A stretch of 64,000 nucleotides of DNA, from NCBI GenBank assembly GCA_051530055.1, contig CM121341.1, forward strand, positions 11,758,784 to 11,822,783, given 5' to 3'. This document shows, piece by piece, positions 47,665 through 50,244 of the stretch. Each line of letters begins with the position of its first letter. Within the stretch, counting starts at the first letter, position 1. This stretch comes from Neoechinorhynchus agilis (taxonomy: Eukaryota; Animalia; Acanthocephala). Below the pieces are notes generated by a model that was given only the letters and a program-made list of their open reading frames with translations, did no database searches and was not told the origin of the DNA. Both the position numbers and the translations under genes were made by a program.

Positions 47665-50244
47665 TCATCTAAGTGCCCGGATCCTTGCGAAATCGCTTAA
47701 CCTAGTCAATAAGCCAATAATCGACTAACAAAAGCCCAAAAATGACAAACCTAATTTTTGCATGGTGATGGTGGGATGGTTGAGTGTTGGACTCAAGTGG
47801 ACCGAAATGCCTTTGACGAGGTGGTGGCGTCGGTGGAGTTCCCTGTCTGTTTGCCTTTGCGTGCTGGTGCTTATTACCATCGTCCCCTGAGCAGCATCGC
47901 CTATCTTTTGCCTTACACAAATCATTGACGCTTTTAAAATGAGAGATCAAACATTTCTCCAAGTCGCTCTTTCCACCATCATCCCGCCTCCTCGTCGCCG
48001 CCGCCGCCGCATTCCCCCCTGCTCCATACAGCAAATGAGTATTGTTTTTGCAGTCACCCGCGAATGGAAGCGCTGATGAAGACGCCCGCAACTTACTCGA
48101 GCATTTCCCAAGAGATTCGATCCCACCACTACCGCTGCGATTAGTATTCAAATTCTTATAAACTTCCTCACGAATGCTTCGAATCTGTCGTCGCAGGCTG
48201 CCAACACCTATCGGAGAACCACCTCCTTCCGCCGCCGCGGCCGCTCCTGGACTTTGCTTACTGATGTTACGCCGAGAAGTAGCTGCTGCCGATGAAGAAG
48301 TCGGAAACCGACTTTGTTGCTTTTCATCGGTCATCTCGTCTTCTTGTTCGTCATTCTCGTCCCAAGTAGCTACCCATTGACTGAGGGGAGTCGGCGGTCC
48401 ACATACTTTGATCGCGAATGTTTCAACCGGGTTAGAAATGCCAGGATCATTGTCAAATCCACTGACCGATGGCCGAATCGCCACTGGATCGTATGGAGGC
48501 GGCTGACTTTGTTCTCGTCTTCCACTGGAACTAACTCCAGTTGATCTAGGAGTTTTTGGTGGTTTTCCTTTCGCCTGTGGAGGGCTATCGGAATCTCCTA
48601 GACCGGTATTGCCGCAGGTTGATCGACGGTTGCCATCACCAACACCTCCAATACAATTGGCAGTCACATATTGACTGGCTGTAGTGATGACCGAATTCTT
48701 CGTCTTAACGATGGATTTTCGTTTTGGCGGAGGTGGAAGTTGTGTTTGCTGTGGCTGTTGACGAATGCGTTGCTGCGTTCCTCCCGATCCAACTCGGTCA
48801 TTTGGTATATGAGCACCAACTACAGTCGACGAAGGGCGTCCGATCTGTGAAAATACTTTTAATTGAGCATTACTCGGATCAGCCGACGATGACGACTTCG
48901 AAGATACCTCCCAATCGAATGGATCATCAAAATGGATGTTTTGTCTTCGAATGACAGCTTCGAAACATGCTTTCAGCTGCACATAGTTAGGATTGTCACT
49001 GTATTGAAGGTTTGACACATGATCCAAATAGAACTTAAATTCATGTGGAAGATACTCAAGCAGGTTTGTATGGTCGTACCGCTCTTTTATCTTACCAACA
49101 ACCTCCTTATCCTTGAATCGACGCCACGGCAATTGCCCCCCACTGAATTCTATGAGCATGTAGAACAAGCTCCAGAGGTCATCATGACGACCCATTTCTT
49201 TATTTTTGTGAGCGTTCACGGAAGCGTAGCGTACTGTTCCTCGAAATCCCGCCTGAGGTCGAGCCGGTCTCACACTGCCGTCAGGTGCCGTATACTTCCT
49301 TGCGAGACCGAAATCGAGCATGTATTTCGATGATTCCAGATAACGGAGACGTGCATTGCTCGAGTACCAAGCTGGAATCTTCGATTTAGACGGTATGGCA
49401 ATCGTAGGCGCATCGACCCATTGCAAAGTTCGACTAAATAAGGTTTTTTAGCTTAAATTTCAACAAAGTCTAAATTTTCGATTCTATATAACAATTAAAA
49501 AAATAGGCGGAATAAACGACGACTGTATCGATTAGTCTCTATTTGTTCTTGATCTAAATATGAACAAAGCAAATCGTTCATTGCGTTTTTATTGCTTCGT
49601 ATTAAGCGTTAAACTAAAACTTCAATAATGCACCAATTGCGAAGAAACCAGGATAAGCGTTTGGCTAAATTTTTTAGTTTGCAGCTAAATCTTTTTTCTT
49701 CTAAAACTCACCGGTTTAATATCCCGATGTAAAAATCCGATCGAGTGAATAGATTCTATACATTGGACAAGTTGAACACCGAGCCTCAGCATTGTGCTCA
49801 TCGAAAAAGCCTGTCTTGGTTGTGCTCGCCTTAACTCAGCGAGATTTTTCCCCTGCAGACTCATGACCACATAGCTGAACCTCTCACTTGTCCCTCCGCC
49901 CATAAACTGGCAAACATTTACGCAACCTGCTCATTCATAACGGGAGAAACGACCTTGAATCAAGAAATTTACCTTGCAACCTGCGTAGAACGGTAACTTC
50001 CATTTTGAGGACTTGTTTAGCTTGATGACATGATTCCAATTTAAGTGCAAGTCGATCTCGGCTATACAGATCAATCACCTCATAAATTTGTCCGAATCCG
50101 CCTCCGCCGATTTTGTTGACCTATCCACAAGCGCAGATTCGAGATTTAACCCAGTGCCTAAAATCCGGCACTTACTACTTTCCATTTGTCTTTAATGATA
50201 GTGTCCGGTTCTAGGAGGTCGCTATCAGACGCCGACGAAGACAT
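47665..50244 (-). CDS. TTBK: Tau-tubulin kinase (TTBK/Asator-like); exons 50244-50176, 50120-49973, 49926-49712, 49433-49387, 49322-47751, 47701-47665
   Basis: [18 protein letters not shown]...[56 protein letters not shown] and [13 protein letters not shown]. Four GT-AG introns (55, 46, 278 and 49 nt; the last is less certain) plus one non-canonical insert. Confidence 0.93.
49323..49386 (-). other. Candidate non-canonical hairpin intron in TTBK (64 nt, AA...AATA)
   Basis: GTCTA|AA-TCGAAGATTCCAG...CTGGAATCATCGA-AATA|C, with 12 Watson-Crick pairs and one A.A mismatch. Removal gives [21 protein letters not shown] with the conserved 10-residue spacing. Confidence 0.75.

Follow-up and report, generated by a model that had tools for sequence, protein, structure and literature searches.

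The described systems closest to the case reported here involve sequences that interrupt genes. Our subject is a 64-nucleotide (nt) insert within the fourth exon of a kinase gene of the TTBK/Asator type from Neoechinorhynchus agilis, an eoacanthocephalan fish parasite, located in a 64,000-nt stretch of contig CM121341.1 (assembly GCA_051530055.1), which we call the window. [quoted passage not shown] In SOS splicing, exonic DNA transposons are excised from the mRNAs of Caenorhabditis elegans and of human cells once the inverted ends have paired; the cut sites lie close to the repeats and are not GU-AG, and AKAP17A, CAAP1 and the RTCB ligase take part (PMC12779559). The substrates named in that description (Tc1, Tc3, Tc4 and hsMar2) share with the insert an exonic, transposon-derived inverted repeat that is capable of pairing and has no GU-AG at its borders; however, the process described there is imprecise, whereas a functional outcome for the kinase insert would require an in-frame product within the kinase domain. 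The inverted repeats of Tc1-type elements are also much longer than the stem of the insert. Introners, the MITE introns of Fritillaria borealis and the maize Ds and Mu elements provide a further parallel, as transposons in coding sequence with a usable acceptor at one end, here TTCCAG|. Introners, however, make GT-AG pairs with the target duplication, which the insert does not, and the Fritillaria genome is dominated by non-canonical introns, whereas the other introns checked in the N. agilis window are canonical. The internal eliminated sequences of Paramecium are likewise short, have TA at both ends, carry Tc1/mariner-like ends, interrupt coding sequence and upon exact removal restore the gene; in contrast, the insert resides in an animal genome and represents one observed case.

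The insert occupies 49386-49323 on the minus strand; 62 of its nt are the element itself, and the other two are one of the two TA copies. Read in the sense of the mRNA, the sequence here is ...CATACCGTC TA|AATCGAAGATTCCAGCTTGGTACTCGAGCAATGCACGTCTCCGTTATCTGGAATCATCGAAATA|CATGCTCGATTTCGG, and the 64 letters of the insert itself (49386-49323) are AATCGAAGATTCCAG CTTGGTACTCGAGCAATGCACGTCTCCGTTAT CTGGAATCATCGAAATA. Upstream of the insert exon 4 runs TCG AAC TTT GCA ATG GGT CGA TGC GCC TAC GAT TGC CAT ACC GTC TA, and after the insert it resumes with C ATG CTC GAT TTC GGT. The insertion falls in a variable loop of the kinase, between HRDIKP-SNFAMGR and YMLDFG, and with the insert in place the reading frame ends as ...CHTV* (GTC TAA), with the stop at the first base of the insert. 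The two inverted arms are separated by 32 nt and begin 2 nt inside each TA, with AA between TA and stem on both sides; pairing of the 13-nt arms proceeds through 4 bp, an A.A mismatch and 8 bp, for a total of 12 pairs. The original prediction, which had been made from the sequence alone, described this anatomy (TA duplication, AA spacers and a 12-bp stem) accurately in every checkable detail, and its placement of the insert between HRDIKP/SN and DFG is borne out, the position being in exon 4. The features of the locus are the following, in window coordinates.

49323-49386, minus strand: removable unit, made up of the 62-nt element (49325-49386) and the 3' TA copy (49323-49324); removal restores the frame and the orthologue length
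49387-49388, minus strand: the 5' TA of the target-site duplication, which with A49386 makes an in-frame TAA stop (49388-49386)
49372-49384, minus strand: 5' arm of the inverted repeat, in mRNA sense TCGAAGATTCCAG; the cryptic 46-nt intron has its acceptor at the TTCCAG| end of this arm
49327-49339, minus strand: 3' inverted-repeat arm, CTGGAATCATCGA in mRNA sense, 13 nt, 92% complementary to the 5' arm
49712-50244, minus strand: exons 1-3, with the canonical introns 1 and 2 between them
50175-50121, minus strand: intron 1, 55 nt, GT-AG
49972-49927, minus strand: intron 2, 46 nt, GT-AG
49434-49711, minus strand: intron 3, GTGAGT...TTTAG, 278 nt, following HRDIKP; its position is common to Pomphorhynchus laevis
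49387-49433, minus strand: exon 4 upstream of the insert, 15 residues
47751-49322, minus strand: exon 4 downstream of the insert, the rest of the kinase domain and a low-complexity C-terminal region, open throughout
49372-49417, minus strand: cryptic 46-nt GT-AG intron, GTCGAT...TTCCAG, which replaces 10 residues by 16 and is most probably used in the public model
47750-47702 and 47701-47665, minus strand: inferred 49-nt terminal intron and last 37-nt exon of the annotated model, from the fit to 701 amino acids (aa)

The duplicated TA, the inverted ends, the tiny size and the absence of any coding capacity suggest that the insert derives from a TA-targeting DNA transposon; in particular, it has a TA target-site duplication (49388-49387 and 49324-49323) and terminal inverted repeats, complementary at 12 of 13 arm positions, which are two of the traits of a MITE or deletion derivative of the Tc1/mariner type. 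With a probability of roughly 0.55, we favor the interpretation that a TA-targeting MITE-like or internally deleted Tc1/mariner-type element inserted recently, and that the pooled draft assembly contains the resulting null or hypomorphic allele. The element would be a very short non-autonomous DNA-transposon remnant, either MITE-like or an internally deleted element left behind by abortive gap repair, which would have entered exon 4 of the kinase gene recently and within the Neoechinorhynchus lineage. The reference copy would then be the insertion allele, polymorphic or newly fixed, and its default transcript would carry a premature stop. Such an allele may be tolerated in heterozygous form in the population, or constraint on the kinase may have relaxed in a parasite that is reported to have lost cilia genes. 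TTBK2-type kinases act in ciliogenesis. Given that cilia-related genes are reported to be lost in N. agilis (PMC12690905), relaxed constraint is plausible. Partial rescue at the RNA level may also occur, either through the 46-nt cryptic intron that ends in the TTCCAG of the element or through hairpin-directed excision. The assembly was made from about 50 pooled outbred worms and single females as a MaSuRCA hybrid of Illumina, Oxford Nanopore (ONT) R9.4 and very little HiFi data (PMC12690905), and a reference obtained from pooled worms can carry a polymorphic insertion allele.

The recency of the insertion is suggested by the state of the gene and by its orthologues. The kinase gene is encoded on the minus strand with its ATG at 50244 and exons at 50244-50176, 50120-49973, 49926-49712 and from 49433 onward. 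After exact removal of the insert the product scores 95.1 bits against the Pfam Pkinase profile, and its nearest relatives are found in a Logan contig (74%), in Rotaria (70%) and in Pomphorhynchus laevis (64-69%). The N. agilis protein retains every residue that does not vary among 14 TTBKs, which argues that the gene has not decayed and, together with the roughly 540 open codons downstream, that the lesion is young. The P. laevis locus has the same three intron positions, and its exon SNFSMGRYVYNHHEVYMYDFG is uninterrupted; the exon is likewise uninterrupted in the Logan contig. The shared introns and the uninterrupted P. laevis exon identify the insert as an insertion in the Neoechinorhynchus lineage and not an old intron. 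A protein search with the C-terminal region of the kinase returned zero matches, and exact look-ups of the downstream open reading frame matched no other contig. In the public P. laevis gene model (GJ496_011406, WNNJ02003558.1; positions 4796-4880 of our locus L003), 17 residues (GR...DFGL) are missing, although the DNA encodes them without interruption; the gap corresponds to a 51-nt GT-AG "intron" that was called within the AT-rich exon.

Hairpins of this kind are more numerous in the window than shuffling would lead one to expect, which favors the transposon reading. Counting TA-flanked hairpins that are 30-150 nt long and have a stem of at least 12 bp, we find 4 loci in the 64 kb, compared to about 1 per composition-preserving shuffle. 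The probability that a TA hairpin landed on the only frame-breaking segment of a conserved kinase loop, with a size that restores the orthologue length, is far below 1e-3, and the coincidence cannot reasonably be attributed to chance. The insert alone has a predicted fold of -20 kcal/mol (z = -3.5; 1 of 200 shuffles was equally stable), with z dropping to -1.8 when 10-nt flanks are included. An E-value scan of 47000-51000 against Rfam gave no RNA family match at the hairpin, the window contains no DNA transposase, and no part of the insert was copied from nearby sequence in the window and its flank.

Removal of exactly 64 nt yields a loop that has the length found in every orthologue and the conserved V ahead of YMLDFG, in a frame that stays open for about 540 further codons, to 47702; comparison with the orthologues thus upholds the residue-for-residue match in length that had been proposed for the corrected protein. 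The junction would read ACCGTCTA|CATGCTC, with ACCGTCTACATGCTC as the empty site, and the TA repeat leaves three equivalent exact borders (TA..AA, AA..AT and AA..TA). The original prediction overlooked a second 64-nt deletion, shifted by 5 nt (GT..CG, 49391-49328), which gives ...HTKYMLDFG with a K before YMLDFG. In the orthologues the residue before the Y is V, I or C, and this favors the TA|TA junction over the GT..CG deletion. The further step taken in that prediction, from exact restoration to actual removal and hence to a gene that functions through structure-dependent excision, is unsupported. TA-duplicating insertions restore the empty site automatically; the argument is circular, because any such insertion yields a perfect empty site when it is deleted on paper. 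The step is also undermined by a lesion lacking a hairpin in the neighboring PIG-L gene, by the pooled nature of the assembly, by the otherwise canonical introns, and by the bridging introns that the annotation pipeline makes.

The borders at which the protein would be restored have no GT-AG, GC-AG or AT-AC termini, and clean removal of the insert is beyond any canonical pair of splice sites, which supports its interpretation as a transposon insertion. Only two in-frame GT-AG pairs keep the DFG motif, one of 13 nt (49391-49379) and one of 46 nt (49417-49372). The earlier assessment of these as weak alternatives agrees with our analysis: the donor of the 46-nt intron, GTCGAT, is poor, and the near-invariant GR is lost with it. 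All other introns checked (in the TTBK, hexokinase, PIG-L and RRM genes) are GT-AG, the checked introns of the window measure 37-55 nt with the exception of the 278-nt one, and the seven confirmed donors have A or G at +3 (GTAAGT, GTAAAT, GTGAGT, GTAAAC and GTGAGC). The flanking GT-AG introns and the remainder of the kinase are intact, as had been stated before. The MsrA and UTP23 proteins of the window have exact matches on chromosome CM121341.1 of GCA_051530055.1. The hexokinase encoded in the window is colinear with solved structures, and the hexokinase, MsrA, UTP23 and RRM genes are free of errors, as is the rest of the TTBK gene.

The PIG-L gene (45063-44304, minus strand), about 3 kb from the TTBK gene, serves as a control. 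It contains a canonical 37-nt intron and then a frameshift, caused by a 10-nt insertion, CCCGTCCACG, at 44693-44684 in the conserved VxIxDxxDFPDDP region; this lesion has neither a hairpin nor a TA. Removing the 10 nt gives VKIHNDHPFPDDPHVFYDS, whose alignment to homologues from molluscs, mammals and elsewhere is gap-free. The GenBank model of this gene (ACOME3_002749, 195 aa; model P0121) skips the lesion by means of a stretched intron, and 26 conserved residues are lost. The absence of a hairpin from this lesion reveals that the assembly holds frame-breaking insertions that no hairpin mechanism could repair. A 41-nt hairpin at 44742-44702 was considered as a second case of the TTBK type within PIG-L and rejected, since the 37-nt intron and the 10-nt removal produce a gapless alignment; in Pfam comparisons a 1-nt repair of the same frame scores 73.4 bits versus 70.5 for the version with the hairpin removed.

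The public model of the kinase gene extends from 50244 to 47665 and encodes 701 aa. By enumeration, this length and this end fit only the combination of a 46-nt bridging intron with a 49-nt terminal intron, and the model almost certainly uses the 46-nt cryptic intron. Since the pipeline behind this model also got across the PIG-L lesion by lengthening an intron, at the cost of 26 conserved residues, the annotated use of the 46-nt intron is weak evidence that it is used in reality. The implied 49-nt terminal intron has a weak donor, GTTTGT, and would swap the last 16 codons of the long open reading frame for 12 others.

Several observations weigh against a recent transposon insertion. The outermost bases, AA at both ends, cannot pair with each other, an unusual trait in a Tc1/mariner element. 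Searches for further copies of the element or its arms (pattern matching with 3 mismatches and blastn-short) found none beyond chance in the window and a further 5.5 kb next to it (about 70 kb), and with no second copy in this sequence, the assignment to a repeat family is unproven. That neighboring conserved genes should both be damaged on a single assembled haplotype would be an odd coincidence for rare independent alleles, and could point to assembly error or to an unseen removal process. The BUSCO scores of the genome (47.1% metazoa, 58.4% eukaryota) are 8-13 points under those of the transcriptome (54.9% and 71.0%; PMC12690905), which also fits transcripts that are cleaner than the genome.

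Two alternatives would have the insert leave the transcript. In a hairpin-directed process similar to SOS splicing, the inverted ends would pair in the pre-mRNA, a spliceosome-independent cut would be made near the base of the stem, and the ends would be religated. An exonic inverted repeat, which in the insert has a stable predicted stem, is the described trigger (PMC12779559), and exon 4 contains inverted repeats able to pair, with a predicted stem of 12 bp. The inability of canonical splice sites to remove the insert and the excess of transcriptome over genome BUSCO are consistent with this process, as is the location in a loop that varies and might accommodate small indels. The perfect intactness of the rest of the gene is consistent with it too; however, recency of the insertion explains the intactness equally well, and the PIG-L lesion next door is not rescuable this way. 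Moreover, the process is described as imprecise, with many out-of-frame isoforms and rescue of function only in poorly conserved regions, the substrates named there are whole Tc1, Tc3, Tc4 and HSMAR2, a transposase-deleted Tc1 and transposon-derived repeats, and the authors leave the required repeat traits undefined (PMC12779559). We consider such excision unlikely at this locus; under it, part or most of the mRNA would be in frame and the gene functional despite the insertion. Alternatively, the spliceosome might rescue the transcript by using the cryptic intron of 46 nt (49417-49372), for which the exon would provide the donor, ATG|GTCGAT, and the arm a good acceptor, GATTCCAG|. The junction would read TTTGCAATG|CTTGGTACTC (TTTGCAATG|CTTGGTAC), the rest of the element would be translated in frame, and the kinase loop would be 6 residues longer. 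This is the sole in-frame GT-AG pair of a realistic size and within the local range of 37-55 nt, the downstream frame runs through the insert with no stop, the Pfam kinase score remains high (91.6 versus 95.1 bits), and the annotated 701-aa product ending at 47665 fits only when this intron is combined with the 49-nt terminal one. Nevertheless, the donor has a C at +3, where all seven confirmed donors have A or G, the product is without the nearly invariant G150 and R151, and the annotation pipeline can be shown to fabricate introns that save the frame, PIG-L model P0121 with its 26 dropped conserved residues being an example; we regard this route as quite unlikely. Hairpin-directed removal and cryptic splicing of the 46-nt intron are not mutually exclusive.

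The remaining alternatives place the explanation in the DNA or its assembly. The 64 nt, and with them the 10 nt in PIG-L, may be present in no worm genome and have resulted from hybrid assembly of pooled, polymorphic and error-prone long reads. The hybrid assembly by MaSuRCA, in which ONT R9.4 and Illumina data of some 50 worms in a pool were combined and HiFi data were scarce, the occurrence of two small frame-breaking insertions less than 5 kb apart, and the concession by the genome authors of possible assembler limitations (PMC12690905) all fit an artefact. However, a TA duplication combined with inverted ends matching at 12 of 13 positions and a unique 32-nt core is a signature of transposition and not of basecalling or consensus error, no segment of the insert was copied from nearby, and the other genes in the window are error-free, making an artefact improbable in our estimation. 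Alternatively, the insert might be a TA-bounded internal eliminated sequence, retained in the germline and cut precisely from somatic nuclei. Nothing speaks for this except the TA at each border and the fact that excision on paper is exact; a segment eliminated from the soma should be under-represented in DNA from whole worms, and this would be the sole such case among about a dozen genes in the window. To our knowledge, DNA elimination of the TA-bounded type is known neither in Syndermata nor in any other animal, and we find this explanation barely conceivable.

A broader proposal would be that N. agilis routinely carries short TA-flanked inverted-repeat elements in its coding exons and removes them from the mRNA by precise, hairpin-guided, spliceosome-independent excision. 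This is improbable. If it were true, the species would put SOS-type splicing to natural, fixed use, with the TTBK insert as an instance, and part of the BUSCO gap would stem from this process. Clean removal from the kinase mRNA, if it occurs, would provide a first example in nature, beyond laboratory strains, in which a conserved enzyme relies on hairpin-directed, non-spliceosomal transposon excision, and would imply that a 12-bp stem suffices. Should the insert represent no more than an insertion allele, its importance would lie chiefly in annotation, as the TTBK and PIG-L models were bent around lesions and conserved residues were lost. The public RNA-seq data for N. agilis comprise 74 libraries (PRJNA1223661). 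Small exon lesions, whether real or artefactual, could contribute to the genome scoring below the transcriptome in BUSCO.

Other palindromic mini-elements are found in the non-coding DNA of the window, which indicates that such elements exist in the N. agilis genome. Long imperfect palindromes with 33-34-bp stems are located in non-coding sequence at 27119-27279 and 27732-27895 and are probably foldback or MITE-like elements; the former begins with TA|AATCG, as the TTBK insert does. A small TA-flanked palindrome at 42621-42665, TACGTGATCGATT...AATCGATCATGTA, is laid out like the insert, with TA followed by 2 nt and then the stem, and is apparently non-coding. The same applies to a 56-nt hairpin with an 18-bp stem at 59888-59943. 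A scan of metagenomes with an arm-gap-arm pattern gave one match (Ga0214544_1000106; 4185-4230 of our locus L005), which has the same 13-nt arms in a perfect hairpin; with its 20-nt loop, GC-rich sequence and lack of TA flanks, it was judged to be coincidental. Helitron, piggyBac, hAT and PIF/Harbinger elements were also considered, and none of their target-site patterns fits the flanks of the insert. Retroelement debris is present at 2500-7000, 14400-15050, 25266-26657, 34569-37767 and 60850-63350, and includes a frameshifted long-terminal-repeat-type pol, two related copies of a non-long-terminal-repeat element, one of them nearly full length, and additional reverse-transcriptase fragments.

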